Part shown: positions 40,307 to 62,309 of the stretch, one piece after another
Layout: each line of letters begins with the position of its first letter
Position numbering within the stretch: the first letter of the stretch is position 1
Assembly: GCA_019828565.1 (NCBI GenBank)
Contig: JAHDYR010000038.1
Location: forward strand, 14,635 to 78,634
Source of the DNA: Carpediemonas membranifera BICM
Lineage: Eukaryota > Protista > Fornicata
Length of the DNA stretch: 64,000 nucleotides
Reading direction: 5' to 3'
Position numbers and translations under genes: made by a program
The notes under the pieces: generated by a model
The model's database searches: none
Told to the model about the DNA's origin: nothing
What the model saw: only the letters and a program-made list of their open reading frames with translations

Positions 40307-41449
40307 ATGGAAAAGACCCAAAAACGAGAAATCCTGATTGCAATTGCAAAAGAAGTATTCTACTTTCAACGCGATTGTGCTCAAGCCATGCCTGTTGCGG
40401 TTTCAGAGGTGTGCTGGGCTATTCTGCCAGATGATATCCGAGCTCTCTACAAGAAGAAGCAAGCGATGGCTTGTTCTCTTCGTCATGCCCTTATCCACGC
40501 TCTGGATGGACTCGCCCCCTCGTCTTACCAGATCAACACCGAGGGTAAGGTCAAGGGTGTGTTCCTCAAGGACTTCGGCGAGATCAACCTATCAAGGCTG
40601 CAGGACAACCTGCAGGCAGCATCAGGTACCACTAGCACTGTGGTATGGCAGCCTCCGGTTTCGCGCTACATCAGCATCCCCTTCCAGACCTATTCGAAGA
40701 AGAAGGACAAGAGGGCTCGGAAACAGTCTCAACCCGCCCCTCAGTCGGTCGTAACTGTTCGTGACAATCTGGCCAGTGAACACAGACAGCGGGAAGCAGC
40801 GCACATCGACCAAGTCGCTTCCCAATTTTCCACATGTGTGGCGCAGGCAACGGCACTTATCCAGACAGGAATGAACCGGCGCCACGCACTCGACAACTTC
40901 ACTTATCAGCAGCTACGAAACTCATTGCGCATGTGTTGTGGGGTCTGTCACGATCCGATGAATCTGCTGCTGAAGATTGAGGACGACAACTCCCTGCAGT
41001 GCCAACAATGCGAGAGGTACTTCCATTATAGCTGTGTCAGTGGCTACTTGGAGGAGCGAATGGCATACCCGGCATCTAACAGGGCCGATAAGCAGAAGAT
41101 ATCCATCTGCGATGACTGTAAGGCAATCAATGGTAACGACGAGTGCTTTCATCGTACACCTCCAACCGAGACCACCCAAGCAGCGGACTGTGGTAGAAGT
41201 ATTAAGGATGGACCCAGCATGCTCTGCTACTTTTGTTCCAACTGGTTCTGTCCGGATCATATCGCGGACACCGTTTTTGACACTGGAACTGACATGTTGA
41301 AGCGTCCTTCTCGTCGTGTTCCGGTGTGCGTGAATTGCTTTCCTCGCATTCAGAGAGGCCAGCGACAGTTCAACGGTGAGTATACCAACGCTGCCCGCGC
41401 TATCATACTGTTAGAATGGCCAGTTAATCCGGGGATATACGGAGGATAA
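40307..41449 (+). CDS. PHD-finger-like protein with a second Cys/His finger; paralog of 51789-53009
   Basis: CGVC...CQQC..YFHYSC...CDDC (C4HC3); then C..C.NWFC..H...C..C. Confidence 0.75.
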   Translation: MEKTQKREILIAIAKEVFYFQRDCAQAMPVAVSEVCWAILPDDIRALYKKKQAMACSLRHALIHALDGLAPSSYQINTEGKVKGVFLKDFGEINLSRLQDNLQAASGTTSTVVWQPPVSRYISIPFQTYSKKKDKRARKQSQPAPQSVVTVRDNLASEHRQREAAHIDQVASQFSTCVAQATALIQTGMNRRHALDNFTYQQLRNSLRMCCGVCHDPMNLLLKIEDDNSLQCQQCERYFHYSCVSGYLEERMAYPASNRADKQKISICDDCKAINGNDECFHRTPPTETTQAADCGRSIKDGPSMLCYFCSNWFCPDHIADTVFDTGTDMLKRPSRRVPVCVNCFPRIQRGQRQFNGEYTNAARAIILLEWPVNPGIYGG

Positions 41450-42488
41450 ACGCAAATTCCTTATTCGTGCTTCAGGGCGTTCGAAGTCCTAAGAAGCAGC
41501 TGAAATGATAGATGCGAGTGCATTAATGACATATCCATGCTTGATGTAACATGTGCGAGATTGGTGGTCGAGCAAATTGCCTCTCGCATTTTAAGGTCGA
41601 AGGCAAAAGTGGTCGTACGACCAAGTGGCCTTGTCAGCAAAGTCTGTGTGTTCTAAAGAGTATCCTCTGTTGTTTTTATGCGTCAACTCCTTCTCAGTCG
41701 CCGGGAACTAATGACTGAATCAACCAATCAAAAGAATGAAGCTGTCCCCCAGAAAGCAGGCCATACTACGGTGGTATATAGTCAGTATACATCATCGGAG
41801 TATGTTCGGTTTTCTGGGGGACAGATTCAATCTTCTGTATCTCAAAATTTGCATTTTTTTATCGGCGATAAGATGGAATCAGAAGACTTGGCTCAGAGCT
41901 CAAGTGCACTTAGCTCCATAGAGCTGAGATCGGCAATTGGCATGATCCACCGCCGCAGAAGGTGCCCAAAGAGGCGCTGACGTTGAGCGGTCGATCATGG
42001 CCGTTTAACACATCAACGGGGGCCTCATCCCATGCAGTATCCATAACTTTTTACCATTTTCTTCTAGCTGCACTGGTTGGCAAATGAGCATTTTGTGTCG
42101 CCTTCATCATGGCAATATTCGAGATCAAATCCAGATTTGCTTTTTTTGTGCACAAGGAGCACAACAGCAAATTCGCAAGTAATGCAGATGAAAATCAGAT
42201 GAATCTTAATCAGGCACTCTCATATACACACTGCTTTAGTTTCGGAGCCAACGTCCATAAACTGAAGGAGTTCTGAACATTGTTTCACCAATTGTGTGAA
42301 ACTGGTGAAATTAATGAAATAGTGTTGAAACGGCCAGAGAAGAAGAAGGAACCCCGGCAGCGCAGTTGTAGCTGCTCTTATAGAGCTATAGCAACAGCCA
42401 AATTGTCTGATTTATCTCACAGACCGTTGCGCATGTACCTGCCTAGTTTTTGTACAAAAATCTTGTTTTTTTAAACTCTACAGAAATC

Positions 42489-45026
42489 ATGGTTGCTCAT
42501 ATTGTGTTCGAGAGCCACATCGGTACAATATATGATGACCAGCCACGCTCAGTTGAGCGCATGAATTACCTTCTTGGCTGTACCTACTTCGCCATGGTCG
42601 GAATTGGCCTCAACTCCGCCAGGACAAGACCTCAGCGCGAGCAATTCTGCCAGCTCGTCCGCGAGATGGAGGAGGCTGACCTGATCTCCCAGCGCATTCA
42701 CGACGCAAGGTTCTTCCGCCCTCCAGCAGACTCCCGTCCCTTCCAACGTGCCGCAACCGCACACGGAAATCAACACCCTCCTCACCCTGTCTTCGTACGG
42801 GACGATTACCGCACCCACGCCATCCAGGAGCGTGCTTTGCAGGACTACAACGACTCAGAGGAGCGCTCCGCCAACTTTTCTGAGATCATGGAGCTCACAT
42901 CGATCCTGATGTACGTCCGCAATGGCTTCAACTCGACCCAAGAGCTCTTTAAGCTCATCAACAACATCTCCCGCCGGCTTGGAAAGCCGATCTCGAAGAA
43001 CAAGACCGCGGAGGTGCTCATTAAGGACCTTGGCATTGACATGACCAGAATATCTGGTGTCTCAGAGGCCCTCACTGAGGAGGAGCGCGCCTTCGTCAAG
43101 CATCTCGTGCCGTGCAGGTCGGTCTCAGGCAATACAACATGGCGGCGTACCATGTCCGGCACGCAGTCGCGACTTGAGCTCACGAACCGTTTGACTGTAG
43201 CCGACGGAGCCGAGCCGACTCCGTTTTTTCGACCACGACCTCGTCGCCGACCACACTTGGGAGCGACCGACGCTCACCCTCCACTATGACAGCGAATCCG
43301 ACGCTGTCCAGCACTACCAGTCCCTCAAAGGCAGTGTAGGTATCGCCCATCTGGGCAAGCGACTGAACAGCTCGACCTGGGACAAGGTGGAAACGGTGTG
43401 GTTCGATGGCGTGTACTATCTGCAGCAGGCAGTGCTTCACCCGGAGTGGCTCGAGTCTGACCAGACGAACTTCGAGCGTTGCTCTCGTGCCCTTCAGGAC
43501 CCAGGCCATGTCGAGTTCCAACCACTAAAACTACTCCTGTGGCTCGACGCATGGAAGGGACATACCGCAACGTTCAAGATCCGCATCTACGACCCGTCAG
43601 GCTTCACGTTCCCTAACCGCATCACTCCCCCTTCCGACTCGTTGAGTGTCTTGCCGGTGAGAAGGAGCTGACGGAGGAGGGAAACCTTCAACTCGTTGAG
43701 GAAGAAGTCGAGCGGATCTATCAAGCCCTCATACCGATCAGAGGAACTGACCAGGTCACCACCTTCGACCAAGTCATCGTCATGGGCGATCACGCGGCCA
43801 TCAGGAAGCTGTCATCCGGCATCGAGGGTAATGGAGGGCACTATCCCCAGCCCTTCAACAGCATCCGTCGAGACCACAAGGCGCTGCACCCCATTCCGGC
43901 GCACTCTCGGGTCACCTTGCATGATTTGCTCGAGCAGAAGGCAGCGTTCCACGCCGTGCAGGCCGACCCCGACCGTGTGCAGGACCCGAAAGAGGAGTAT
44001 GGCAACTTCTCCGACAAGAGGGCCATCTTCGAGAACCGGCCAGAGCCCCGAGTCATCCACACGGAGCGAGTTGTCTTTTGTCCTCCGATCATGCACAACT
44101 CGCACCGCCTGCTCGAGCAAGTGGCACGGCTATGCGCCAGCTTCCCCGCTGATCGGAACGCAACTGCCGTAGACAAGCGCAAGCTCCAGCGCATGTCATC
44201 CAACCGCAGTATTGACCGCACTGTCGGGTGCAACGAGCAGTCTGCTGCCAGAGTTCGCATGGCGAACACCACGAACGAGGATTACGAGGCTCTTCCTGAG
44301 TCCGTCCAAGATATTGTGCGACTCATTGGCTATCTCCAGGCTCTTTACTACTCAACCGAGCCTGTCACCGACAGCAAAGTCGCATTCCACTTCTTGGCCG
44401 CGTCCATGTGCCACCTGTTCCACGTCATGCTCAGTCTGCAGGCACACCAGACAAAGCTGGCGTTGCTCCCTCCTGGGCAAGCAGACAAGGCGGAGAAGCC
44501 ATGTGCCCAGACACTCTATGTCAACAGCAGGCTCACTGCCCAGCCTCTTCTTCACGATCATCTCCGCATTCCTCTTTTTTTACCTCCTCGAGGAGTTCTT
44601 TGAGAGAGAGTTCATCAAGAACCAGGAGGTCCGAGCCGAGTTGCACAGGTCGGCCATGATCGAGAAGCTGTGTTTGACCGAGCAGACCACCCTCATCTGC
44701 ACGTTCTTAACGGGTATTCGCTCGTTCGGTCGCCAGGACTACTCAGTCCCCCGCTGAACAGGCTTCGTCGTGTCCGAGTCCACCAATGCTGCAGACAAGC
44801 TCGCTCATGGTTCGCCATTCGCAGCCACATGGAGGCAAGGCACCAATTCCATGCCACGGCGGCGGTGGTGCGCCTCTTCCAGGAGCTCGTTGACGAGATG
44901 TGGCAGTACGTCAACGATTATACGGCTTTGGCATGGGACGAAGAGTCTGGGGTGATGGTTTGCGAGTTGGCAGACATGGGTGAGGAGCTTGTTTGCTGCA
45001 TTTGCGGTCATGCACGCGCTGAGTAG
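42489..45026 (+). CDS. RAG1/Transib-like DDE transposase (reconstructed across ~4 homopolymer frameshifts near 43228, 43630, 44578 and 44750)
   Basis: LLLWLDAW (D1); VMGDHAAIRKLSSGIEGNGGHYP (D2; cf. RAG1 [20 protein letters not shown]); PPIMH (cf. IDALH); YLLEEFFE (E; cf. Transib LSEEAQE). Confidence 0.75.
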
Positions 45027-45149
45027 TGAGTAAAGGAGTTTTATTGGTCAGTACATCCCATTTGGTGTGTTTCCCCAACTACCAATTTTTTTTTTCAACA
45101 TTGGTAGTTTCACAATTTTCACATTACGTCACTTGTTTGGTGAAAAACA

Positions 45150-46074
45150 ATGGAAACGCCACTTCCGACATGGCTGACGATGAATTTATCGCAACACAAG
45201 GCCTATATTCAATATGTCAAGCTTTCAGACAAGTCTGAGCTCTTGCCGTCTGTCAGGGCCTTCTTCAACAGAGATCTGGCGACTTCGAACCTCGACTGTC
45301 TGAACTACTCATTCGTCATGTATGTCAGACCCACTACACTTCTTGTTAACACAGTCTCATCGCAATTCGTGGGGTTGAGATGGACAACATCAAGGCTGCA
45401 TGCCTTCTCTTCCGCGAGTCGTACAGGGAGGGGCAGACCCTGAGCGGACAACTGCACCAGGAGCGGTTTGTCATCGGCTTACGGACAGCCGTCTCCTGCA
45501 GAGGTCTTGGGTTCGCGAGGGTGCTTCTTAGCATAGCATCTGCCGAAGAACTCGTCCGACTGCAGTGCGACAAGCGACTCCAGGACATGTATGCGTCCTT
45601 TGGCCTCAAGGAGTCATCGGACCCGTCGCAGGTCGAGCAGCTGGTGGACACGGGGGCAACCCACTTGCCATTGTCACGATGGAGGGCACGATGGGTCCCA
45701 ACAAGTGGACCAACCTCGGCAAGAGCCTGACAGAGTGCTGTGGGATGATAATGCAAGGCTCTACGTTGATCCGCGTGACCAACCATGGTAATAGACTTGA
45801 TCAGCACGCTCATGGGATGCCTGCTTCCGACAAGAGGAGTGTTGACTCGTTCGTGGAACGCACCCGTGTGTCCGTGCGCCGTGAACGTGCGGCAAAACGG
45901 CCTAACGTCACCCGAATCAGGCAGAAGTTGATGATTATCCGCCATTACAACCTTCGTTCTTTCACGCTGGTCAAAGAGATCAAGGAAACGAGGACCGAGA
46001 TGCGTAAGGAGAAGAAAGCCAACTTCTGGGACAGTGAATGGAATATTTCCGTTGAGGATGACGAAGAAGTGTAA
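45150..46074 (+). CDS. GNAT-family acetyltransferase; 35-nt intron at 45320-45354 and a frameshift in a G-run near 45655
   Basis: Acetyl-CoA motif A LRTAVSCRGLGFARVLL followed by MYASFGL. Confidence 0.7.
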
Positions 46075-46099
46075 AATGAAATGAAAATAAAACAAGAAT

Positions 46100-46863
46100 T
46101 TATAGCTCCTGTGCCGAACACTCTAAGTAGTAATTCATGATGGCTTGGTATACCTTGCGACGCAGCACATCACGCGATTCAGCCTCAGCACGTTCCGCAT
46201 TCCGCTTGGCAATGACAGAAGTGAGCTGACTGAGTGTCTTAGCCTCCTTCTTCAGAACTCTGGTGGGTCTGGCGAAGATGAGATCCGCGTCGCGGTCACG
46301 GCAAGGCTTGCTCAGGACGAGCTTGACGTCATCGACCGTCACACCGCACGATGAAGCAGCGAAGGCATGGACCTTAGCCCGGTAGGCGATGGGAATGCGG
46401 TGAAAGGCATCATCCATCTCGCGGACAGTCGCGATGAGTGGGTCGTCCGTGTCCAGCTCATCTGTCTGGGCGTCAAGACTGAGGAGAGCCTTGAAGCGGT
46501 GACGCTTGTCCTCATCACCGCCTCCCCTGCCACTTGCGGCTGATCTCTTCGACCGACTGGAGATTGCCGTAGAGCTTGTCCTTCTTCAAGGAGGCTACTT
46601 TCATCTTAGGGACCTCGGCGGCAAACTTCTGGCTGAAGTCGACAACCCATCCGTTTGCGCGGGTAATATCGTCATTATTAAGGAGGAAATTGCTGATAAA
46701 GGTCTGAACGATCTCGATGGGCGTCTTGTGAGCTTTTTCGGGCTGTTTTCGTGGACTTGTTGGACTTGCTCTGGCTCTTTTGCTGCGCTTTCTTGCCAAG
46801 AGCCATTCTCCTCTCCTTTTGAGCTTCAGTGGCCTGTATATTGCCTTGTTTACTTCTTGCCAT
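46100..46863 (-). CDS. Basic protein with a histone-H3-tail-like N-terminus (two homopolymer frameshifts)
   Basis: Starts MARSKQ and contains KTARK; three overlapping ORF pieces join at A- and G-runs. Confidence 0.55.
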
Positions 46864-47279
46864 CGTTGTTTCCTTAAAATGCGTGTGAAAATGTGAAATG
46901 AACTGTGACTCTCGACATTGCTGCGCAGCTATGGTATTCCAACGGCACAGAACGGGTTTATAGCATGCATATGATCCATTCTGATGCCTTTATCCTCTAT
47001 AACCAACATCAGTCCATCAAAATGAATCTTGCAACAGAATACTCATCCACACGCATCGAGAACGAAAAAGAAGCATATAACCAACATCAACAACCTAATA
47101 GAAGGCTGCATGCAAGCGTAGAGCTCTCCTAGTCAATTCTTCATTTTCACCACCATCGATCTCCACGTCAGGATGAAACCGTGCGCCCAAAAGCTCAGAG
47201 ATGCCGTTATAGATGATATAACGACGTCTCTGAGCTTTTCAGCGATTTCAGTTTCTGGCCATGGATAAGCTACAAATCC

Positions 47280-47344
47280 TGTCAATGTTGTCCTCAGAGG
47301 ACACTGAAAAATTTAATCTGTGTCCTCTGAGGACCAAATTGACA
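47280..47344. promoter_or_regulatory. Long inverted repeat (possible cruciform) in a divergent intergenic region
   Basis: GTCCTCAGAGGACAC / GTGTCCTCTGAGGAC perfect 15-bp arms plus outer TGTCAAT/ATTGACA; function is inferred. Confidence 0.6.
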
Positions 47345-47543
47345 AAATCGAAAATGGAGCGATGAGATGTCCATCGAAAAACGGCCAAAAACAGCGCAGG
47401 TGCAGAATGAGCTGAAAATCGGCCAAGGGGTAGCTCTTGGGTCTTTATGGCTGATCGGAGGTATTTACATGACAGCTGGCAATATTTATTGAGATAAAAC
47501 GTATTTCATTTTTCGAGAAAGTCTTCTGAGGACCAAATTGACA

Positions 47544-49721
47544 ATGGTTAACGAAGACATCATCTCTCTCGGCAAACTGAAGGAGACAATGCTTGCTCCT
47601 GACGATTCTGGTATGTCACTTTCATTTTCACGGTCCAATTTACACAGATGATTCATTCCGTGCATACGACGCCCTTTCGTCCACAAAGAGCCGTATAACC
47701 TGGCTGCAAGATCACGGCATCGTCTCTGATGACCCTCTGTTCTTCGTTTGCGTCCGTCTGATCAGCATTCGTACGATCAACGTTGTTTTTCGGGTTCCCG
47801 TTGAAGCGCACTTTAAGCCAGCACGTTCACGACTATGGAGTTGCCAAACTACGCGCGATATGTGACGCAACTAACCGCAACTACCTCTGCGAGGTCGACT
47901 TTGACTCTCCCGACACAATTGAGGCATTCCGACGGAAGTTTTGTGACCACTTCACCGCCAAATCTGTTCATAAGGCTCTAGTCGGCGTCGACTCGCTCCC
48001 CTGTTGAGAAGCAGGTTGAGATTTACCGCGCATTCCACCTTGTGTTGCGCCACAAGGACTCGAAGAAACTCGATTCTCGTGTTCCGGCAGGCCAATTTGG
48101 CCAGTTTATCGCCCACGCCCAGCTCAGCAAGAAGCTGTCCTTCGCTGGCTCAGAGAAGCTGGCCGAGGAGTTGGCTAAGATCGGTTCGCTCGATCCGTCA
48201 GCTCCTCTGAAGAGGAAGATCGCTCGTCTTGAGAAGGAGCTCGCCTCATCGACTGCTGCTCTGATGAAGGTCCAAGAGGAGTTAGTCCGGGCCCAGGATC
48301 GCTCAGCAGCAGCCACCAAGCCTTCTTCCGTCGTTGCTGCCCCTCAGCCGCTTCCGGTTGTCGACGCAGAGTCCACGACACACGATGAATTTTCCGACAC
48401 TGACGAGTCCGAGTCCGATGGCCACTCTGAACCGGCCGCCATGCAGGGTGACGGCGTTCCTTTGCCACAGTCTGATCAAGACGTCGACGTAGAGTCCGAT
48501 GTGGACGACACAGACACCGTTGGTTCTCTCCTTCAGCAGCTAGACGACACCATTGCAGGCCTTGATGATGTCCCTGAGTCTGTGCGCTTGTTGGAGCAGT
48601 ACGAGCCCTTGATAAAACGGCTTGCTGAGGAGAGGGAGGCGAGGGAGGCGCTTGAACAGGCTAACAGAGAGTCTGAGGAGTCCCAGAAGAGACTTGAAGC
48701 TGAGTTAGGTCAGCAGAAGGCCGAGGATCAGGCGATCCATCAGTTTACTCAAGCAGAGTTGGCACGCGCGAGTGAGGCTGGGCTTGAAGCGCTCGCCGAT
48801 GAACTCGAGGACAACTGGGCTGAGCTTGTCAGGCGCGCCGAGGAGGCAACAGTGGAGCTTGACCGCTACGTTCCTCTCGCTGCCTTGATGGTACTGTTCC
48901 AGAGGAACAATGTGACTGGAGCCTTATGGACTCGGATCAATAGCACCATGATGAGGTACGGGGGCCAGAAGTTCATAACGGTCCCACCCCTCGACCTCGG
49001 TCTGTCGCCAGAGATGAAGGCTATCATCAAACAGCACTCTCCGACGCCTGCCAATGTTCCCCCTATGCAGATATACTTACGGAGCGACGTTGATAGGCAG
49101 AAGTACATCGACGTGGAGTACGACAAGGTAGGCGAGCGAGTTCTCAAAGATCGTAAGAGTTGGCGGAAGATTGCAGTCAACCCGGATGGATTGTGCATCG
49201 GCTACTGCCTGCAGAAGGTTGAGAATGGCGAGTTCGACAAGAAGTTTGCGGCAGAGGAAGTGGCAGCAGTGAGGGAGGAGGTGCGCGCCTGGGGATTCTC
49301 CGATGCTGGCGAGAGGCTGAGGCTTGAGACGTCTAACGTGTTCGTGCCCACCCTGATGTTCGACGATGCCACTGATTGGTACAGCAACTTTGGTGTCATG
49401 GCCTGGTCAGCTCTGAAGAGCAAGACTGTAGTCGTTATCTGGGTCAAGATGTTGACGTACCATGACAAGTATATTGTGCGGATGCATTTGACGGAAGTTT
49501 ATGAGTCCGGCATGGTCCGGCGTGGATCTGATGAAGATGTGGCTGCGGCGCAAGCTATTGTGGTCGTCAAGGATGAGCATGCGACGCTATTTGTCCGCAA
49601 ACGTTCAAAGGGTGGTAAGAGAAAGGCTCATACGACTTATATCAAGCGCAAGGCAGTCGATAAGGATCGCGAAAAGAGAGTTGTTGATGCCGAGGACGTT
49701 AAGCGTGGAGTTCCCGAGTAA
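47544..49721 (+). CDS. Coiled-coil/acidic protein with a C-terminal OTU-like cysteine protease; intron at 47611-47647 and two homopolymer frameshifts
   Basis: IAVNPDGLCIGYCL (D-G-x-C), VREEV, DW, VVKDEHATLF (His). Confidence 0.68.
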
Positions 49722-49746
49722 AAAAGAGATGTTTTGACATTTTAAT

Positions 49747-51765: not shown

Positions 51766-51788
51766 AGTTCAAAATCTCCCTATTTAAC

Positions 51789-53009
51789 TTACTCAATTGG
51801 CTTCATATCCGCCACCTTCTGGTAGACAGTCATACACTGGTCGCAGAACCTGACACGATAGTCCTGGCCGTCGAGATGGAACTCAGCATAGCTGAAGTGT
51901 TTCTCTTCGCAGAACCAGTTTAGGCACGCCCGGCAGACGCCAGTGTCCTTTGTCGACTTGTCTCCGTCCTTGATACACGCGTGACATCTGTTAGACCTTC
52001 CTGCCAGACTGCAAGCTGCGCAAACCTTTCTGTTCTTACCATCAATCCTCTTCTCTCTGACACACTGAAGATGCATGAACTGATGGCAGAGATAGCACGT
52101 TTCATACTCGTTTCTTTTCATGTTTGGGTTGAAGTACCATTCAGGTGAGGCACAAACAGCGCATGCGAACAGTAACTTACGCTGATATAGCTTCAGAAAC
52201 GTCGCTTGCTTGAGGGCGGGGACCTTATCGTTCATTTCAACGGCCTTGGGTGACTGCTTGAGGAGATCAGTGACAGTTGTGGAGAGTGAAGCCGTCACCA
52301 TCGCGGCAACCTCCTTCAAGTCAGCCTCTTCGAGCCTCGATCGCTTCTGAGCAGGCTCATGCATCTGCGCATCAAAATTAAGCTTCTTGACGGGGGAATC
52401 AGGCTTGATGGTAGCCAAGTCAGCTCTTTTTCTGAGCTTTGGTACCAATGTTGTCACTGGAGTCTTTGTGGGTGTCTCTGCGGGTGTTTCTGCTGGGGTA
52501 CGTGGCTCAGGCTGGAGCTTGCGATGCTTGATCCTGATTACAACGGCTGGAGGCCATTGAATGCCGGTGCAAGTGATCAGACTGGAGACATCGTGGAGTC
52601 CAAGTCCCCGAAACAGCACAGACATCCTGTTTCTAAACTCCTGCAAGTGTTCAGCTGCATTTGCTCTGTCTCTGACAACCAGGTAGGGTATCTTTGTGCC
52701 AATGAGCTCTGTGCCACCCTTTCTACTTGCCACAAATGCCTGAATGGGCTCAGTAGTCGTGCGCCTGACGGAGTTTGCAATAGCAATCTTGCGAAAGCCG
52801 TTGCAGAGGCCCGATATCACATCCTGCATGCCAAGGAGAGCGCGATGAACGTCAGAGGTCGTCAGACCGATAGTTGGGATGTCCGCGACGTCGAAAAAGC
52901 ATTCCAGGAAGCTAGTCACGAACAGCCGGCGGTACTCTGTTCTCTTATCCGATCCGCAAGACGTGCCCTGCGAAATCTCAGCTTTCTTCGCAGTTTCACT
53001 GGTCGTCAT
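51789..53009 (-). CDS. PHD-finger-like protein with a second finger; paralog of 40307-41449
   Basis: CAVC...CYLC..FMHLQC...CAAC; CHAC...CRACLNWFC..H...CDQC. Confidence 0.75.
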   Translation of the reverse strand: MTTSETAKKAEISQGTSCGSDKRTEYRRLFVTSFLECFFDVADIPTIGLTTSDVHRALLGMQDVISGLCNGFRKIAIANSVRRTTTEPIQAFVASRKGGTELIGTKIPYLVVRDRANAAEHLQEFRNRMSVLFRGLGLHDVSSLITCTGIQWPPAVVIRIKHRKLQPEPRTPAETPAETPTKTPVTTLVPKLRKRADLATIKPDSPVKKLNFDAQMHEPAQKRSRLEEADLKEVAAMVTASLSTTVTDLLKQSPKAVEMNDKVPALKQATFLKLYQRKLLFACAVCASPEWYFNPNMKRNEYETCYLCHQFMHLQCVREKRIDGKNRKVCAACSLAGRSNRCHACIKDGDKSTKDTGVCRACLNWFCEEKHFSYAEFHLDGQDYRVRFCDQCMTVYQKVADMKPIE

Positions 53010-53944
53010 ATTCTCATCTTAAACTGCGCAGGTGTTGACGACAATGTTCCGGTTATCCACGAACGAAAGGCTTAATCATATGACCAGTTGCCTCCATGAA
53101 GTCGGCAAGATACAAGATTCTGTTCGAGAAATACGAAATCACATCACTGGGCTGAATTGCGAGGGTTTGGTGAATGAGAGGCTGAATGACACACAACACG
53201 TTCTGGAAGAGATAGGAGATATGTTTATAGATGTAATACAGCAACTTAAAGACCACTAACACGTTATTATCACTTTGAATAAGCAATGAATGGTTATGCA
53301 ACATCAGCACCTACCTACGAATCACAAGAATGCCCCTAGCACGTCGTATGCAAGCAAAAATGAGACTTACCCGTACCTTCCGCACGTTTCTCTACGTTTC
53401 ACCAACGTTGGTGAAACGTGTGAAATAGTGAAAAAGATACGGGTGAATCTCATTTTTTCTTGCAGTTTCTTGTGCAAAAGGGTGTTTATCCTCCGTATAT
53501 CCCCGGATTAACTGGCCATTCTAACAGTATGATTACAGAGCCATTGACACTCGCGGATGACGAGGCTCGTGATGATGTCAGTATCCGCGAGGAGGTGAGT
53601 GATGAGGAGGATGACCAAGAGTGATAAGTGGAATAAAATGAACGAATGACTGATGCGGCACATTCTGTTTACGCTATACGACGATTTTAGAGAGCGCCAG
53701 AGAGGTGCTGCAGGGAGAGAGCTTGTGCTTGCGTATCCTGAGGGATGCGGGATGGGAGGGGCCGACGTAATTGGCCAATCCACGTTTGTGGATCACCTGG
53801 TGTCGTCCATACCGGGCGTCTCTCCGCCACAGGCTGTGTTGCTGCGCATGGAAAGCAGTGTTAACTGTGTTCTATTGCACGATAGCACGGGGTTATTGAC
53901 TGATGCGGCACCTACCTTAAATTGCTCGTCATCCACAGTTGTGG

Positions 53945-55018
53945 ATGGACCGATATCGCGCTAAGCATCGCCAAGCACCTCTCAAAGGGCAATCATCCGC
54001 TCGACAAGATCATCACCTGTTCATTTCACCATGGAACGATGAGCAGCTCCGCATCCTTGGCGATAATGCGCGAGTTCTTCAGCTGCTCGCCATGATGGTC
54101 CCTTGGATGCGGAGGATCCTGGCCTCGCCTGACTTTAACCCCGGGTGCAAGCCTACTAGCACCGAGAAGGACCTCCTCGGCAAAGAGCTCGAACAGGACG
54201 TGGATTCATCAAGAATCCTTCGTGAGATGTCCAATCGAGCGGCGTACAACAAAGCCCATGCCAAGATCATTCGTGATCTCGTTGAGTACCGGAACCGCGC
54301 AGCTCACAATGAGCTTGAGCCCGACACCCTGCCCAAGGTCCTGGAGCTGGTCGAGAGCTTGGCCCAGGCCTTCTCGGTTCCATTGCACGATAACGTCAGG
54401 GCGTTCATCGCGCTGCTTAAGTCGCCAGTGTCGCTCGTTGCGACAAGTGAACATCATGCTCTGACGAAGAAGGTCAGCATTCTTGAGGATGAGATTGAGA
54501 GGCTGCGTAGCGGCGGCCGTAAGACCATGCTCAGGCTGCCAGGTGTCAGGTCTCAGCCGGAGCCCACCACTTTGGAGCAGGCAACGATGACGACTACGGA
54601 CTTCGGAGACCAGAACGCTGTGGACAAGGAGATGATGACGGAGCCCATCAGTTTGGACGAGGAGATGATGACGGACCAGGATGAGCCGAGGCCCAGGCCC
54701 GAAGACACGGGCAAGACGCGCGGTACGCTCATGTCCCGCACACTGACTGCTAGCCAGGTGGACCAGCTAGCTATGGCCAGAACGCATGACCCCCCGCTTG
54801 TCCTGTCAGGACGTTGCATCGTGTGCGGGGGCTCATGCGAGACCTCAGAGTGGGCTTGCCGTCGTACCTCAACGACGACACCCAAAGATCCTTGCCGAAC
54901 GTTGATTCGGAAGGTTAGGACTGGGAATACTCGCGACGTCTCTGTCTACCTCACAGATGAGGCATTTGAGTGGGTCAAACGTCGCGATCAGACAGGCAAG
55001 AGAGCGAGACAGGAATAA
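53945..55018 (+). CDS. Swt1-like HEPN-domain protein with coiled-coil and C-terminal CxxC
   Basis: DSSRILREM...IRDLVEYRNRAAH (RxxxxH) followed by a helical LELVESLAQAF. Confidence 0.7.
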   Translation: MDRYRAKHRQAPLKGQSSARQDHHLFISPWNDEQLRILGDNARVLQLLAMMVPWMRRILASPDFNPGCKPTSTEKDLLGKELEQDVDSSRILREMSNRAAYNKAHAKIIRDLVEYRNRAAHNELEPDTLPKVLELVESLAQAFSVPLHDNVRAFIALLKSPVSLVATSEHHALTKKVSILEDEIERLRSGGRKTMLRLPGVRSQPEPTTLEQATMTTTDFGDQNAVDKEMMTEPISLDEEMMTDQDEPRPRPEDTGKTRGTLMSRTLTASQVDQLAMARTHDPPLVLSGRCIVCGGSCETSEWACRRTSTTTPKDPCRTLIRKVRTGNTRDVSVYLTDEAFEWVKRRDQTGKRARQE

Positions 55019-55039
55019 ATGAATGTATATGTGCATGTC

Positions 55040-55420
55040 TGGGCCTCAGCGCTGTCGTTCAGGCCAATCCACGTTTGTGGATCCGTGCAGTTTATGGCTT
55101 ATCGACCGGACATCTCCTGAACTGAGCGCCAGGGGGCGGAGGTGGCGTTGGCGTGGGGCGTGGAGGCGCTGGGGGCGGGGGTGGCGTTGATATTGGGCAA
55201 TCACATAAAGTGCACGGTGCTTGGAATTTCATTCCAACCTCAAAATGGCGGGAAAGCATTATTGGAAGGAACTAGTGGCAGCTATGCGGTTCTTTATACT
55301 GCAAAAGCAACCAGCTGTCGTCAAAAAGCGCGCCATCTACCATCAATAACCAACATCTGCGTTGCACTCCACTGTTCTCGGTCGTTAATGCACAAAATCA
55401 GTAAACAACATCAGAAAGGA
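55040..55420 (+). repeat. Dispersed repeat copy A (shorter)
   Basis: Near-identical to the core of copies B and C. Confidence 0.95.
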
Positions 55421-55452
55421 ACAAAAGATAGATACTATAGACGTCCGTTTAC

Positions 55453-56169
55453 CTATTCAGCCAGGCGCAGGTACTGACGCGCCGTCTCTCGGGCAGAAGA
55501 TATACCATGGAGGGATGCGTTCTGGGCAAGGCGCTTGAACGACACAACGAACAGCGGAAGTCGCTCCCACTCTCCTTGGGCCCAGTAGTGATGGTCGTAC
55601 TCGAGTGATAAATATTCGTAGGGGTGAATTGTTCGAACGCACACGAAGAAGAGAAGCGGGAGCAGTTTCGTCTCATCAGCAGCAACACGAACAAGAACGT
55701 GACCAATGTGGCACTGCACATTGGTCACGACCGGGTTGTCGTTGATGCGATGGACACCGATTGTTTCAGGGTTGGCGCTGACGCAAAACTGGGTTCCATC
55801 GATGAGGTAGTCGTAGTTACCATTTGACTGGCGCTCATGGATGACCTCACCAGCATAGACACCGACCAGAGAACCGACGTCGATTCGGTGCGACGAGATG
55901 ACCCCTTGGCCAACATCGGTGCCCATGAGGGACTTCTGTGGCTCAAGAAGGATCCCATCTGCGGTCTTAGCGATGCCGTTCTCAAGTAGTTCTTCGCCTG
56001 CATGCTCAGAGTCCGCCTTCTTGCCACCTGCACCGAGGAACTGCTCTCTATCCTCCTTAGAGAGCTTTTTCAGAGACATCAATTTCTCGTAATCATCTAA
56101 AGACATTGTAATGTTCTCCTCTTCCTCTGATCCATCTGTAGCAACATGCGGGATCATGATAGTGTGCAT
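55453..56169 (-). CDS. SET-domain methyltransferase 2 (paralog of 49747-50555)
   Basis: TDVGQGV...GSLVGVYAGEVI; IGVHRIND; EYLSLEYDHHYW. Confidence 0.8.
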   Translation of the reverse strand: MHTIMIPHVATDGSEEEENITMSLDDYEKLMSLKKLSKEDREQFLGAGGKKADSEHAGEELLENGIAKTADGILLEPQKSLMGTDVGQGVISSHRIDVGSLVGVYAGEVIHERQSNGNYDYLIDGTQFCVSANPETIGVHRINDNPVVTNVQCHIGHVLVRVAADETKLLPLLFFVCVRTIHPYEYLSLEYDHHYWAQGEWERLPLFVVSFKRLAQNASLHGISSARETARQYLRLAE

Positions 56170-56235
56170 TCCTGTTGTCACTCACAATTGCGAAACTCGC
56201 TCTCTGTTCCATAACCTGCACATCGGATTTGAACG

Positions 56236-56838
56236 ATGACGACAGACAGCCAACAGTGGATCGCATTTGAGCATCTTGCGGCTCTATACACCACTATAAA
56301 GCGTGGTAAGATAGAGACCGCAAGTCAATGCATCAACATGATCGAGGATTCCTGTGTGGAACGATTTGTGATGTTCTGGCTAACTACAGAGAACGCGGCG
56401 ACGATTTACAACGAGAAAACGGCTGCTCTGCAGGAGAGCTATGGAGACGGAGTTGTGCGGTGCTCGGGTACGGACAGCATCACGAGAACAATATCATCTT
56501 CCTCTCGTGGTGTCGAGCATGTATCGAGCATTGAGCGAGCATCAAGCGTCATGCAGCGTCACTTGGAGTTCCTGCATTGGGGCAAGATCGCCCTTTCCTG
56601 TAGCGGCAGGACGCTAGCTGACTTTGCGACTCAGCACTTCCCCTTCCGTGTCTCTGATATTGAACGCAAGATTGTCTTCGTGATGGTCACCGTTCCCAAT
56701 GAGTTCATGGTTTGGTATAAGGCGCTTGTTGACGAGAAGATCGATGAAGAAGAGTTTACCTACTACATCATTTATCGTCTTAACTCCAGCGCGAAGGATC
56801 ACATGGTTGTTAATGCCCTAACCTTCAAATATGAATGA
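56236..56838 (+). CDS. Hypothetical protein
   Basis: Intact 200-aa ATG ORF, divergent from SET2. Confidence 0.55.
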   Translation: MTTDSQQWIAFEHLAALYTTIKRGKIETASQCINMIEDSCVERFVMFWLTTENAATIYNEKTAALQESYGDGVVRCSGTDSITRTISSSSRGVEHVSSIERASSVMQRHLEFLHWGKIALSCSGRTLADFATQHFPFRVSDIERKIVFVMVTVPNEFMVWYKALVDEKIDEEEFTYYIIYRLNSSAKDHMVVNALTFKYE

Positions 56839-56857
56839 TCAGAGAGAGTGATGTGGT

Positions 56858-57320
56858 TAAATGGATTGCAAATGAGTCTTTTTAATGTCTCACCACCTGT
56901 TTGGGCCTCAGCGCTGTCGTTCAGGCCAATCCACGTTTGTGGATCCGTGCAGTTTATGGCTTATCGACCGGACATCTCCTGAACTGAGCGCCAGGGGGGC
57001 GGAGGTGGCGTTGGCGTGGGGCGTGGAGGCGCTGGGGGCGGGGGTGGCGTTGATATTGGGCAATTACATAAAGTGCACGGTGCTTGGAATTTCATTCCAA
57101 CCTCAAAATGGCGGGAAAGCATTATTGGAAGGAACTAGTGGCAGCTATGCGGTTCTTTATACTGCAAAAGCAACCAGCTGTCGTCAAAAGCGCGCCATCT
57201 ACCATCAATAACCAACATCTGCGTTGCACTCCACTGTTCTCGGTCGTTAATGCACAAAATCACTAAACAACATCAAAAGGACTGTTCATACGTTATTAAA
57301 CATTGCTTGCTACTTCTGTT
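56858..57320 (+). repeat. Dispersed repeat copy B (~463 bp)
   Basis: Differs from copy C only at homopolymer lengths, as far as I can see. Confidence 0.95.
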
Positions 57321-57328
57321 TCATCTTA

Positions 57329-58679
57329 TTGTCGTTTACAGCTGTGTTGTCCTCAACAAATGCCAAGATAGATCAACGAGGCGTTCGCGGCTTCCCGTTG
57401 AAGACTTGCCATTGCCAGAGAGAGTGCCATGCCTGGCACGTCTCTCTTCTTGTCTGCCGCGTGAAGGAATCGACCAGGCTGGATTCATGTGCAGCTTATG
57501 CAGCAATGGACACTCTGGAGTCAGAACTGCATTTGCAGCAGCTTATTGCTGCTATTGAGCTTACTTGTGGCCCTGTCCCATCAGAAAGAAACAACAGACA
57601 GGCCCGAAAGATCGCCGCGGTCATTTCTGGTGAGTTTGACAGAGCATTCGACCGTTTCTTGCGCGATCTCTTCGCCGACAGCCCGTCTATCATGAGAAGA
57701 GCTAGATCTCCTGGCGGAGATTCCCCAAGAGCCCATTGAAGATGTGCCTGTCGCGGTAGGAGAAACCGCCAAGCCTGCATCCAAGCTTCAGCCCAAGACC
57801 ACCAAGTCTGCGAAGAAGAAGGTGCAGACAAAGAAGCTGAGACAGCTGGCGCCGCGACGCGCTGGTACGCCTGCCCCGACACAACAGCAGGTCATCGTAC
57901 CACTCAAGAACCTCAGCCGCCAGGAAGAGACAAGCCTTGAAACGTGGATTCGCAGCGTGCCGAAAAACTCTGCCATTACCATCGATATCTCTGGGATGGA
58001 TGGTTTCAACGCCAGTGAGTCGACCCTTCACGAGCTGGAACACTCATTCCAGGAGAACAACGTCCGAGTTATTCGGGCCTGGATTGCTTACCAGCTTTGT
58101 CTCTACGACTGTTTGTCAAGCCAGAAGATTAAGTATAACGAAAACGTGGCCCCCAGCGACGCCCTGCTCTCAGTGGCTCTTCAGCAGCAGAGGATCTTTG
58201 TCCAGGCGAACAAGCAAGGTGCACTTTCCACACGCCTTAACATAACGAAGACCCCCTTCTACAACAACGTTGTGGAGCGTCTGAAAACTGATGGGTGAGA
58301 CAGAAAGCATGATGTCAAAGTTCCACAACATCATTGGTGTCATCATCATCCACTTCGCCGACTTCACTTCCTTGCTGAAGAACCGAATGATCCCGAAGGA
58401 TAACGATACAGTCAGGGGCTTGAGCACCCTCATTGTTCACAGTCATCTGTGCATGGTTTTACTCAACGGCGAAAGATATCCGTCCTGAGATCTACAATGC
58501 TCTGACGACAAGCAGTACATTCCCGCCAGACCTTATGGCGTTTTGCAAGAATGGCATTTGGTCTCGGACAAACCGCGGCGGTGACCCATGAGTCGCCCGA
58601 AAAGCAGAAGCATGCGGACAACACAATAGAGGATGATTCAGAGATCGAGACAAGTGGTAAGAGGGTGAGGACTGAGTAA
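57329..58679 (+). CDS. Hypothetical protein (probably one gene split by several 1-nt indels); start uncertain
   Basis: Consecutive ORF pieces 57329-57739, 57744-58298 and 58291-58488 join at C- and A-runs; likely stop TAA at 58677-58679. Confidence 0.45.
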
Positions 58680-59139
58680 ATGGATTGCAAATGAGTCTTT
58701 TTAATGTCTCACCACCTGTTTGGGCCTCAGCGCTGTCGTTCAGGCCAATCCACGTTTGTGGATCCGTGCAGTTTATGGCTTATCGACCGGACATCTCCTG
58801 AACTGAGCGCCAGGGGGCGGAGGTGGCGTTGGCGTGGGGCGTGGAGGCGCTGGGGGCGGGGGTGGCGTTGATATTGGGCAATTACATAAAGTGCACGGTG
58901 CTTGGAATTTCATTCCAACCTCAAAATGGCGGGAAAGCATTATTGGAAGGAACTAGTGGCAGCTATGCGGTTCTTTATACTGCAAAAGCAACCAGCTGTC
59001 GTCAAAAGCGCGCCATCTACCATCAATAACCAACATCTGCGTTGCACTCCACTGTTCTCGGTCGTTAATGCACAAAAATCACTAAACAACATCAAAAGGA
59101 CTGTTCATACGTTATTAAACATTGCTTGCTACTTCTGTT
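58677..59139 (+). repeat. Dispersed repeat copy C (~463 bp)
   Basis: Direct repeat of copy B, 1819 bp downstream. Confidence 0.95.
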
Positions 59140-59156
59140 ACATCTCCTTAGGACAT

Positions 59157-60561
59157 TTACTTCTGATTCTGTTTCTGCTCTCTCTTCTCCAGCACCTCTG
59201 CCATCTCGAGACCTGTCAGCAGCATTGATCTCATTCCTGCATCACAGAAAGTATCAATCTCTTTTCGTCCGCTCAATCATTGCAATAAACTGCCTGTGCA
59301 GTCTTCCGCGCACACCTTTTGCGCACTTATTAGTGCTCACCTGCCTGTATCCCTTGTGGCATGTGTCACAGCTGACGTTCTCGCGTCCATGAAGGTCTCT
59401 ACCACACACTATGCAGCGCCGATAGAAGACTTGACCCTCAAACCCTCGCTGACAGCAGTCGGTCAGTCTCTTTCGCTGAGCTGCAGACAGGGGTGACCTC
59501 TTCTGTATCATCTAACAGAAGCGGACTCGGCTTGGCGACGCATTCATGCACGCGCATGATGACCTTGAGCTTGTCAAGACATTCGGCAGCAGTGGGACGC
59601 TTCGCAGGGTCGAAGTGGAGCATCTGCATTGCCAGGTCGTACAGGCTGAGACAAGTAGGTGGCGTGGTGCCGCGAATCGGGAGCTCAGAGTTCACGTTGA
59701 CACACTCGAGGCAATCTTTGAAATGTGTCTGTGCCTGAGGTGACAACTGCAACTGCCCACCATAGAATTGGCACCAGTTCAGCAAGCTACCAAGCTTCAG
59801 CATCTTCTTCTTCTTCTTGTTGTCGATCTGCGCCATGTTTGCACCCATGTCAGTCACCTTCGCGGCAAAGGGGGACTTGGGGAGACCGTAAAAGAGCATC
59901 AAAATGACAATACCGCAAGAGTAAATGTCCGATGCAGGTGTCACGACATAAGAAGTGACGGAAAGAGCCCCCTGCCGTCATGCGCGCGAGCTTGGAGGTG
60001 TCGCGTGCAGCAGGAATCACTGAGCGCGAGACAAGGTACTCGTAGAAAAGCTCTGGGGGCAAATATCCATGGGTGCCGCGATACTCGGATGCGAATCTCA
60101 GTTGTATGGCCCACCTGTCGTCGCCATTAGCCGGCTTCCTCATTGCAGACCCAAAATCAATGAGGTATCCCTTCTGACTCTTGCTGAAGAGGAAGTTGTC
60201 TGGCTTAATATCGCAATGGACAACCCCGTGGTCATGCATGTAGCATACTGCCTGCAGCAGATGCGAAACATAGCGGAACTGCACGCTGGAGTGAGCCTTG
60301 CAGATGCCAGCGAAGGGGGTACAGTTGACCAAAGGAGCCATGAAGGCTGGATCACGGTCGACAAAACCTGTATCGACGACAGGGAGGACATGCGGACTGT
60401 CCTTGAGCGCTAGCAGGGTGGGAACCTCCATACCATAATGCTCATCAACTTTGATCACGACCTGCAGCTTTTTCAGGTTCAAAGTCGTGCAGATATTGTC
60501 TACTATTACCAGGTAAGGAAGTAAGTCGCTCCAGCTTGTCGCTATCTAGCTCGAACACCAT
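59157..60561 (-). CDS. Ser/Thr protein kinase (Cdc7-like motifs) with a C-terminal CxxC...CxxC finger; homopolymer frameshifts
   Basis: VVIK, HCDIKPDNFLF, GYLIDFG, RGTHGYLPPE, SDIYSCG, RPTAAECL; RCIVCG...CDTC. Confidence 0.85.
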
Positions 60562-60717: not shown

Positions 60718-61959
60718 TTACAATGTCAGATGAAGGAAAAAGACGATACTGTCGGCAGTATCGCTCTCTGAGCGCTCCTCATCAATCACATTCTCTTGAA
60801 TCTCCCCATCACCATCTCTGCCCGCCACCTCCCCGCCATGCTCGTCGTGGTCGATCTTTGGTTCCTCATCGGCACTCTTGCATAAGTCCACCTCCTCACC
60901 AAAGGCGCCCTCCTCGCTCTCCTCGCGAGCTGGCACCTCGTAGTGCATCCACTCTGCCTGGTAAGCTGGCTCGTCGGACACCGCCTCCTCGTCAGTATCG
61001 CCCTCTCTCTCGCCCTCTGGCATCTCTGTCTCGCGAGTCAGCGAGCCGAACTCCGCCTCCTTGTCAGCCTCGCTCTGCCTCTCTTTCTTCTTAGTATCGT
61101 GAAGCTCGATCATTCTGGCCTTGAGCCTGTTGTAAAAGCCAGCCATCGAGCATCGGCGGCACCAGGTCGGCAGAGCTTGTGATCTCCGGGTTGAGATCAA
61201 AGATCGTCGGGCGCTGCAGGGTCGTCAGGTGGCTGTTTGCCAGCTGGTGGCGGAACTGATCATCGGTGAGGCTGATGCGCTTGTCCATAATGACCTTCCG
61301 AACCTTGGTCAAGTCTCTGGGCCTGCCAGTCCGTCTCTCTCTCTCAATCTCCCGCGTATTAAGCTGGTTGACATCGACATGCACCGGGGGCGCATAGCGA
61401 AGCTGGTTGACACTGAGCCCGACCTGCTTGAGAGCCTCCGAGAAGGTGCTCGGCGCTACATGAGACAGTGCGGATGAGGCCTTGGAGAATACTATCCAGG
61501 AAGCGAGCTCTTCGGGAAGCTGAAGAGCTCGCTCACTGATGTCAATATCGCGGGCGGAAATAGCTGTCATGCCCGTGTGGCTGATGATAAGAGCCAGCGC
61601 ATTGTAGGGGAAGACTAGTCGGACAATAGCTTCCGATGCGACAGGCTCAAACTGCCCAAGCGGCTTGACATTGTCTCTGCCGGAGTTTCGGAATGAGTTG
61701 ACGGCACTGAGAGTGACAGCAGCGGTTGCCTTGTTCAATGATGCAGCAAAAACCGGGCACAAGCGATCTAACATCCTCGGACCGGATCACGGAGAGCGCT
61801 TCGTCCTCGGTACTCCCTCGCTCACGTTGTACGAATTGAACGAACCGCGAAAGGTTGTTTTGCGACCGCTTTCCGGGAAGATTTCTTACTGATGGTGCAC
61901 AACCAAGCATTCTTCACAGCTTCCATGGTTGTTTCCATCTCCTGCGGGCTTCCTTCCAT
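60718..61959 (-). CDS. Protein with a divergent histone H2B-like segment and an acidic C-terminal tail (frameshifted; start uncertain)
   Basis: NSFRN / FEPVASEA.VRL / YN / TAISARDI / LPEELA occur in H2B order. Confidence 0.45.
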
Positions 61960-61960
61960 C

Positions 61961-62309
61961 GATATACGGATTTCAGACTTTCGTCATGCACAAAAAAATT
62001 CGAATCTCTCCAAATGCCCAAAACAGTGGTCAAACCGTGTTCAGGGGTACAAAAAGAGTGCCATAGGCACGTTCTTGCATTCAAAATATTCTAGAGGTCG
62101 TTCATAAATTCTCAGATGGCCAACAGTACGAAAGTCTGAAATCCATTTATCATGAGACCCGACAAATTTGAAATCCATTTATCGGGTGGATACATCACTG
62201 TAGAGGGTATTCATGGATATAGGTGCCTTTTTCGGTGCCGAGGGGAGTCAAAATTTGAGGTCGTGCAGGCAGAAAGTCTGAATTCCGTTTATCTCACCAC
62301 TGCTTAGTG
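61961..62309. repeat. Cluster of four AAAGTCTGAAATCCATTTATC-like motifs ending at a CAC terminus (candidate right end of the large transposon)
   Basis: Inverted copy at 61961-61984; direct copies at 62128-62151, 62169-62183 and 62272-62293; the minus strand from 62309 reads CACTAAGCAGTGG. Confidence 0.6.

Follow-up and report, generated by a model that had tools for sequence, protein, structure and literature searches.

Two nested elements at the locus

The window is a 64,000-nucleotide stretch from the genome of Carpediemonas membranifera, a free-living protist. Between 34450 and its end at 64000, it contains two recently active cut-and-paste DNA transposons, one inside the other. We saw no housekeeping genes in this interval, which agrees with a preliminary description of the sequence.

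The inner element (41404-53531; 12,128 bp) has perfect 48-bp terminal inverted repeats (TIRs) that start with CATACTG, at 41404-41451 on the forward strand and 53484-53531 on the reverse strand, and it is flanked by a 2-bp target site duplication (TSD) of AT (41402-41403 and 53532-53533). It encodes a DDE transposase (42489-45026, forward), a GNAT acetyltransferase-like protein (45150-46074, forward), a protein that we will call gene X (46100-46863, reverse), an OTU-like cysteine protease (48042-49721, forward), SET1 (49842-50555, reverse), a His-Cys dyad protein that is clan CD-like by motif (50740-51765, forward), and PHD2 (51789-53009, reverse), which has a PHD and a second Cys finger. The OTU-like gene probably starts further 5', and there is a putative intron at 47611-47647.

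The outer element is 18-20 kb. Its left TIR (34450-34515, forward) starts with CATGCTG, which means that both elements start with CAT(A/G)CTG; its right end lies beyond the window. It also received a LINE insertion (34826-40156, forward), with a 13-bp TSD at 34813-34825 and 40157-40169. Its genes are PHD1 (5' part at 40307-41403, forward; 3' part at 53534-53624), a HEPN-like gene (53945-55018, forward), SET2 (55453-56181, reverse), a 200-aa protein (56236-56838, forward), a 344-aa protein (57640-58679, forward), a Ser/Thr-type kinase with a C-terminal Cys finger (59254-60561, reverse), a tyrosine-recombinase-like protein with an acidic tail (60718-61959, reverse), and another OTU-like gene, whose 5' part (63189-64000, forward) runs to the window's end (572 aa in intact copies). 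In the window, the 344-aa protein has a frame break and the kinase has homopolymer frame breaks. A repeat of 0.4-0.5 kb occurs at 55036-55420 (forward), 56843-57368, and 58660-59145, and it flanks tandem and inverted duplications in copies L010, L013, and L015. Upstream of the recombinase-like gene, at 61960-62293, are four inverted or direct copies of a 24-31 bp motif; these are internal and do not mark a terminus.

Both elements have the features of cut-and-paste transposons. For the inner element, we found TIRs, a TSD, an empty site, dispersed copies, and a DDE transposase. Copies at other sites are 99.5-99.7% identical and have unrelated flanks; these include a full copy (99.67% identity) with a TSD of CG, and a short-read contig ends at 41404 with a different flank. 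A sister subfamily has TSDs of GG and GA. Across five full elements, the TSDs are AT, CG, GG, GA, and GC, all 2 bp. For the outer element, we found TIRs, dispersed copies with different flanks, and its own DDE transposase, which is intact at a length of 854 aa and whose cluster has 6 members. The same left start appears with different flanks in L010, L011, and L012, and the left TIR has an 86-88% inverted match to right ends in L013, L014, and L015. In the sole outer copy with both ends (L011/L015), the flanking dinucleotides differ (AA on the left and TA on the right).

The empty-site reading indicates that the inner element inserted at an AT dinucleotide and split PHD1, which is restored to 395 aa; L011 contains an intact called gene of that length. 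L010, L011, and L012 have the outer element without the inner element, and they also have the empty site of the LINE. Reciprocal nesting of the two element types was also observed. We are highly confident that a 12.1-kb element lies within the PHD gene of an 18-20 kb element.

The preliminary description had proposed instead that 40307-62309 is a single 22-kb mobile unit with the full toolkit. All of the genes are adjacent, and L017, from a second assembly, does have a kinase, PHD, SET, OTU-like, and protease-like genes and a gene that starts with MARSKQ beside one transposase. But the inner element has its own TIRs and TSD and occurs elsewhere with unrelated flanks, and the outer element, which has its own transposase, occurs without the inner element. 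This refutes the one-unit reading at this locus, and we give that reading almost no credence. Comparing termini among copies, neither 40307 nor 62309 is an element end. A terminus at 62309 (CACTAAG-like) was rejected because copies match through 62309 to 64000. Similarly, L002 might be taken for a larger single element with the recombinase-like gene and the kinase, but it reflects a third CATACTG element that inserted at GG in the recombinase-like gene. Copies with common ends and different flanks do exist for each element, and empty sites for the inner one. The genes are not single-copy: inner copies are found at other sites, and outer ends are shared by copies with different flanks. The earlier proposal was right that the DNA is mobile, that its transposase is RAG1-like, and that cargo of the chromatin-enzyme type is present in multiple copies, but the cargo is not all on one element.

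Transposases with a RAG1-like fold

The two transposases are only ~22% identical, and each has a RAG1-type fold. The D-D-E motifs of the inner transposase are WLDA (43540), GDHA (43785), and EEFFE (44590). Searching Pfam, PDB sequences, or the Atlas with the transposase sequence found nothing, and no reference transposase of the EnSpm, Mirage, Chapaev, Plavaka, or ESTA type came up in the searches. We modeled the family using the outer-type transposase, with the inner type included in the alignment. RAG1, RAGL, and Transib proteins occupied ranks 1-45 in Foldseek (best E = 2e-5), and VIA aligned the model to the RAG1 fold with Z = 12.1 over 370 aa.

As assembled, every copy of the transposase in the window carries frame breaks. 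The inner transposase has four, all at homopolymers (~43224, 43626, 44580, and 44747). The first two are absent from L004 and L005, while the break at 44580, in a run of eight T, is common to three copies. Programmed frameshifting is unlikely, as the breaks are at homopolymers and vary between copies, and similar breaks in gene X (46524 and 46734) vanish in short-read contigs. The breaks in gene X are assembly errors.

The preliminary description had called the transposase RAG1/Transib-like. The RAG1 fold is borne out, but this is not Transib proper. Like the Transib/RAG transposons (such as ProtoRAG, with RAG1-RAG2), these elements have the catalytic core of RAG1, a D-D-E triad, and TIRs that begin with CA, and their separately encoded PHD partner recalls RAG2 (PMC4411706). 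Transib has a 5-bp TSD and ends with a CAC heptamer (PMC1131882), whereas these elements have 2-bp TSDs in all five full copies and ends of CATACTG or CATGCTG, instead of an RSS-like CAC heptamer and nonamer. Their transposases have also lost the motifs that bind zinc, C(2)C and H(3-4)H; the elements are 11-20 kb with 7-13 genes instead of 3-4 kb, and they encode no beta-propeller partner.

Given the termini of both elements and the TSDs of the inner type, they appear akin to the CMCT clade, which comprises EnSpm/CACTA, Mirage, Chapaev, Plavaka, ESTA, and Lanisha (PMC12730594). As in that clade, the ends are 5'-CA..TG-3' and the TSD is within the range of 2-5 bp; for instance, PlavakaB has CATCA ends and a TSD of 2-3 bp, and ESTA, which is RAG1-like by profile, carries a chromatin/DNA enzyme, TET/JBP (PMC12730594). 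But all of the named CMCT lineages have C(2)C and H(3-4)H, which are absent from the stretch that separates the second D from the E of these transposases. These positions hold Y-x-x-P-F and L-Y-x motifs instead, and only the histidine of PPxMH is kept. Distant metagenomic relatives (P0085, P0092, and P0110) do keep C(2)C and H(3-4)H. Also unlike the CMCT clade, the transposase has no match in Pfam, the TSD can be any dinucleotide rather than TA, and the cargo is a multi-gene set of protein-modifying enzymes. We looked for the N-terminal Chapa zinc finger and RING of Chapaev, and the full-length transposases have no Cys-rich N-terminus. The fold suggests that transposition might proceed by excision and integration of the RAG1/Transib type, with a 2-nt stagger.

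Chromatin-type cargo and its conservation

PHD, SET, and OTU-like genes are present separately in each element. Beyond these, the inner element carries the GNAT, the His-Cys protease-like gene, and the ARSKQ-tailed protein, and the outer element carries the kinase, the HEPN-like gene, a Ulp1-like ORF, and the recombinase-like protein. Genes from the window were searched as pieces; otherwise, we used intact copies from other loci.

Several of the assignments in the preliminary description were confirmed. The family profile of the two SET proteins hits EHMT1 (E = 4e-7), and the best SET matches are histone methyltransferases. SET1 starts with MARRK and has INHS and YG motifs; SET2 lacks the canonical NH motif. 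The kinase matches Pfam with E = 1.4e-23 (intact copy). The two PHD-type proteins share 15 invariant Cys, His, or Trp residues and match PHD domains in PDB (best E = 3e-4). The GNAT of the sister copy matches Acetyltransf_7 in Pfam (E = 1.5e-4), and 9 of 10 weak matches in PDB are acetyltransferases. Some genes have the tiny GT-AG introns that are typical of the host: in SET1 (50097-50066; 32 nt), where the annotated copy at L006 has an intron of equal length, and in the GNAT (45320-45354; 35 nt).

Other assignments are more tentative. The motifs of the inner and outer OTU-like proteins weakly suggest this identity, which was assigned by motif only: D-G-x-C, W, and H are invariant across 4 homologs, and the best match in PDB is to a viral L-protein domain (E = 0.2). 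Similarly, motif only hints that the His-Cys protein belongs to clan CD (G-H and C are invariant across 5 homologs), with no matches in Pfam or PDB. The HEPN identity is weakly suggested by Pfam (E = 0.01-0.02) and by an R-x4-H motif. The basic N-terminus of gene X, MARSKQ, is similar to the tail of H3, which lends some weight to the proposed H3-tail mimic. However, the ARSKQ start is missing from the L001/L007 subfamily, where gene X starts with MPPKR, and from L016. Gene X, the 200-aa protein, and the 344-aa protein had no hits in Pfam, PDB sequences, or the Atlas.

The gene at 60718-61959 had been described as H2B-like. It had no match in PDB sequences at E = 10, no histone hit in Pfam, and no histone in fold searches. 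This variant does have a short resemblance to H2B (NSF..SEA..T-I-S-A-R), which is lost in the sister variant and which no search supports. Instead, three agreeing searches, with moderate Z scores, indicate that the product resembles a degenerate tyrosine recombinase. VIA matched it to XerD (Z = 7.9) and to an integrase N-domain (Z = 7.7, rmsd 3.0), and all 10 Atlas rows are integrases (Atlas features 0.93). The protein appears to span the core-binding domain and the start of the catalytic domain. By inspection, it lacks the catalytic R-H-R-H-Y set: the arginine of TG-x-R and the histidine of H-x-x-R are replaced.

The substitution patterns indicate that the cargo is under purifying selection: dN/dS is 0.13-0.18 (0.18 for the His-Cys protein), or dS is saturated at 34-54% amino acid identity. 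The ORFs are full-length, and gene order is fixed across subfamilies. Assembly GCA_002919055.1 contains an 11.6-kb CATACTG element with a 2-bp TSD (GC) and the same core cargo at ~27% identity. PHD and SET genes are constant in all of the elements that we have seen.

Possible roles of the cargo

Overall, the locus is probably best explained as two nested autonomous-type transposons, from one undescribed lineage, that carry a chromatin kit. We slightly favor the view that the cargo forms a local chromatin kit. From the domain types and the signs of selection, the cargo would be maintained by selection on the element itself, and we infer an anti-silencing or other chromatin role. The kit might keep the element open and transcribed, or it might steer the transpososome to marked chromatin. 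The PHD protein would be the reader, as RAG2 is for RAG1; SET, GNAT, and kinase would be writers; and the OTU-like and other proteases would be erasers. N-termini with AR-x-K could act as H3K4-like baits or as internal substrates, and the degenerate recombinase-like protein may be the outer element's DNA-binding protein.

The cargo could instead be a selfish toxin-antidote or addiction kit, built from a HEPN RNase, a caspase-like protease, and OTU/Ulp1 proteases, with SET, GNAT, and kinase modifying the element's own proteins. The R-x4-H motif, the conservation of the His-Cys and OTU-like proteases, and the H3-like tails on element proteins (possible internal substrates) fit this idea. But HEPN is found only in the outer element, it is PHD and SET that are constant, and the SET proteins are closest to histone methyltransferases, so we consider it unlikely. 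A viral origin, with the elements as reduced endogenous viruses that carry giant-virus or Polinton-like genes, is less likely still. The genes are compact, the elements' GC content is below the host's (0.52 versus 0.61), and OTU, SET, and kinase genes do occur in viruses. But in the complete elements (L005, L011+L015, and L016), Pfam and ORF accounting identified no protein-primed polymerase, capsid, or packaging ATPase; the introns are of the host type; and a homolog search found no viral relative of the His-Cys protease. Host-type introns would also be expected of neutral captured host fragments (Pack-type). This seems hardly credible given the full-length ORFs, the fixed gene order, the purifying selection, and the conservation in the second assembly, and given that homology searches returned only copies of the elements.

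A broader proposal is conceivable, although we hold it only tentatively: these elements may represent an old, superfamily-level new lineage of zinc-free RAG1-fold transposons, common to divergent protist genomes. Each would carry a self-contained reader-writer-eraser circuit (PHD, SET, GNAT or kinase, OTU, and protease) along with its own H3K4-like peptide, which would license chromatin or target integration. If true, this would be an independent parallel to how the PHD of RAG2 connects histone marks with a RAG1-type enzyme.

Among DNA transposons, some are already known to carry a single passenger gene related to chromatin. The TBE and Tec elements of ciliates are also multi-gene TIR elements whose accessory genes are under selection (a kinase and a zinc finger in TBE; a tyrosine-recombinase-like gene in Tec), which resembles what we see here, but they have a Tc1/mariner-type transposase and three genes, without SET, GNAT, or OTU. 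Helentrons carry genes for OTU proteases and SET proteins, for which a role in chromatin has been proposed (PMC4067079), but these are rolling-circle elements with one or two such genes, without the set of PHD, GNAT, kinase, and protease. The VANDAL transposons of Arabidopsis encode their own anti-silencing factor, VANC (PMC5735166, PMC10398659). This is a functional precedent for self-encoded anti-silencing, but VANDAL belongs to the Mutator superfamily, and VANC is a single sequence-specific DNA-binding protein that acts on DNA methylation.

Our literature search found no papers on transposons of Carpediemonas, and "transpos" is absent from the genome paper. In the literature that we searched, a conserved multi-enzyme set of the chromatin type, under apparent purifying selection and present in parallel in several divergent subfamilies and more than one genome, is undescribed for this class of transposon. 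With these elements, one could directly test if transposons write a histone code of their own. They also widen the structural range of RAG1-type transposases to include a 2-bp TSD and the lack of a zinc site. Finally, many of the "hypothetical" genes in the annotation of C. membranifera are transposon cargo.

Two nested mobile elements

The preliminary description had proposed a single mobile unit carrying a chromatin toolkit. The biology behind it is real and unusual, and most of the genes and their mobility stand, but there are two nested elements, each with its own ends and transposase. We observed TIR-bounded mobility, 2-bp TSDs, nesting, and conserved cargo.

Positions 41402-41451 and 53484-53533 form a perfect inverted repeat of 50 nt. 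Because its outermost two bases are the duplicated AT, and given the empty site in a PHD gene, we delimit the inner element as 41404-53531 (12,128 bp; each TIR is 48 bp long and starts CATACTG). Removing 41404-53533 restores a PHD gene of 395 amino acids (PHD1; 40307-41403 and 53534-53624). The empty site is present in four other C. membranifera loci (L002, L010, L011, and L012), and L011 has a called gene of 395 amino acids there. Further copies sit at other sites: L005 contains a complete copy (99.67% identity, flanks CG..CG), L004 and L006 contain copies at 99.5% with differing flanks, and L015 contains a partial copy, whose junction is also found in short-read contigs. The gene order is transposase, GNAT, gene X, OTU-like, SET1, His-Cys protein (clan CD-like), and PHD2. 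A collinear sister subfamily of 11.35 kb (L001, TSD GG; L007, TSD GA) has ~45-70% protein identity and lacks the OTU-like gene. L002 has a member of a third subfamily, inserted at GG.

Imperfect long hairpins lie between genes of the inner element (41729-41837, 47184-47344, and 53349-53464); those at equivalent positions in L001, L002, and L016 are unrelated in sequence. Also, 46936-47261 and 48387-49046 are 96-98% identical to L002 (14604-14929 and 16287-16946), in otherwise divergent subfamilies; these patches appear to be recent sequence exchange.

The outer copies in L010, L011, and L012 differ in their flanks, start to align precisely at 34450 (CATGCTG), and lack both the inner element and a LINE (34826-40156, 13-bp TSD) that lies inside the window's outer element. 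The endonuclease and RT ORFs of this LINE are frameshifted. Position 62309, previously taken as the element's end, is internal: L002, L011, and L013 match the window at 98-99% straight across it up to 64000. Further to the right, L013, L014, and L015 carry an OTU-like gene (572 amino acids), a short ORF that is Ulp1-like by motif only, an 854-amino-acid transposase, and the right end, which matches the 66 bp of the left end in inverted orientation (86-88%). The right end of the window's own copy is at least 6 kb past the window end. The single copy traced end to end (L011 and L015) measures 20,079 bp, or ~18 kb once its 2.5-kb internal inverted duplication is left out. Outer copies share ends and differ in their flanks; the flanks of this one copy, AA and TA, give no TSD. 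Its right end adjoins the transposase of an inner-type element; therefore, nesting is reciprocal.

A 0.4-0.5 kb internal repeat (55036-55420, 56843-57368, and 58660-59145) borders copy-number changes of the outer element (also L010 5094-16620 and L015 12564-15213), and may be a recombination hotspot or a shared promoter. In L010, the cassette of SET2 and the 200-amino-acid gene is in six tandem copies; L012 has deleted segments bordered by this repeat; and L003 and L015 have an inverted duplicate of HEPN/PHD-3'. A DIRS-like element (L013 13584-21449; RT, RNase H-like, tyrosine recombinase, split repeats) adjoins the outer right end. More subfamilies are found at L012 5442-7977, L008 299-3922, and L004 15646-17650, with a P0068-type transposase or a divergent SET2/200-aa/PHD1 cluster (~50% identity).

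Transposases

The inner and outer transposases are ~22% identical and share the motifs W-x-D-G, G-D-H, P-P-x-M-H, R-T-x-G-C-N-E-Q, and E-E-x-F-E-R. Sequence searches of Pfam and PDB gave no match. In the AlphaFold model (mean pLDDT 50, core mostly >70), Foldseek ranks 1-45 are RAG1, BbRAGL, and HzTransib; VIA gives Z = 12.1 for the RAG1-type fold (rmsd 4.9 over 370 residues), whereas P element reaches 9.8 and Hermes 3.8. Judging from this fold, transposition would be by RAG1-type cut-and-paste.

Because of the 2-bp TSDs and CAT ends, these elements are not Transibs (PMC1131882). They fit the rule of CA..TG ends and 2-5 bp TSDs of the CMCT clade (EnSpm/CACTA, Mirage, Chapaev, Plavaka, ESTA, and Lanisha) and work alike. 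These transposases lack C(2)C and H(3-4)H, the zinc motifs that CMCT lineages have in common (PMC12730594), but distant relatives from metagenomes retain them. When a profile was run against 1.84 billion representatives, 20 proteins scored at E < 1e-30, with a fringe near 1e-9. In a quick tree, the inner and outer transposases form separate clades, with sequences of other assemblies intermixed. Distant metagenomic transposases from ENA and JGI (P0085, P0087, P0089, P0090, P0092, and P0110) have no Pfam match; some retain zinc motifs and some have C-terminal Cys clusters.

Cargo proteins and their age

The kinase, SET, and PHD-type finger assignments are solid and the GNAT is reasonable, while OTU-like, clan CD-like, and HEPN are putative, motif-level assignments only. 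With two homopolymer errors set aside, both missing in short-read contigs, gene X starts with MARSKQ. SET1 has a MAR-x-K start in all three subfamilies, as does a 123-amino-acid gene of a second assembly (GCA_002919055.1), whereas gene X of L001/L007 and that of L016 do not. These N-termini are suggestive, not proof, of H3K4 mimicry.

The "H2B-like" ORF is the middle part of a 400-amino-acid gene (60718-61959) interrupted by homopolymer errors. The protein has no histone match; the model and language-model features indicate tyrosine recombinases instead. Since its catalytic motifs are degenerate, its most likely role is that of a DNA-binding regulator. Its N-terminal DNA-binding half and the upstream inverted repeats are exchanged jointly between outer copies (61301-62420 versus L011 15051-16139); the variants are 46% identical, each with its own palindromes. 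This suggests an autoregulatory protein-operator module. GATA(A/T)A(C/T)GGA is confined to the inner TIRs (41434-41443 and 53492-53501) and the repeats upstream of this gene (61961-62293).

Comparisons across subfamilies gave dN/dS values of 0.18 (His-Cys protein) and 0.13 (transposase), and synonymous sites are saturated in PHD2, SET2, and the 200-amino-acid gene; the recombinase-like variants have dN/dS of 0.58. In GCA_002919055.1, whose transposases are ~27% identical, L016 is an element of 11,629 bp lying within a gypsy pol gene; its ends are CATACTG and its TSD is GC. It encodes a transposase, double OTU-like, His-Cys protein, basic-tailed protein, SET, and PHD. L017 encodes a transposase, His-Cys protein, SET, OTU-like, MARSKQ-start gene, kinase, and PHD, so one element in that assembly, for which no ends were found, combines a kinase with a putative tail mimic. 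Given the dN/dS values and the cargo of L016 and L017, the kit is old and selected. An RCC1-repeat gene (L017 782-2371), with PHD on one side and the kinase on the other, is a candidate member of the element.

Possible role and genomic setting

Single-gene precedents for such cargo are TET/JBP on fungal CMCT, hAT, and KDZ elements (PMC12730594), OTU and SET on Helentrons (PMC4067079), and VANC on VANDAL (PMC5735166). In contrast, these elements carry a multi-enzyme set; our literature search found no description of the lineage or of such a set. From the domain types, we lean slightly towards a reading of the cargo as a local chromatin circuit that serves anti-silencing or targeting. That it is an internal or addiction circuit instead seems unlikely.

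The transposase and every cargo protein have their closest relatives among the proteins of Carpediemonas membranifera J8273 (GCA_019828565.1, built from nanopore and Illumina data; PMC8516963). The GC content of the region is 0.52, versus 0.61 for the host genes at 1-33724. Among these is a 3044-amino-acid ORF (18532-27666) with ~13.5 near-identical tandem repeats of 594 bp (198 amino acids), which is probably a coiled coil.
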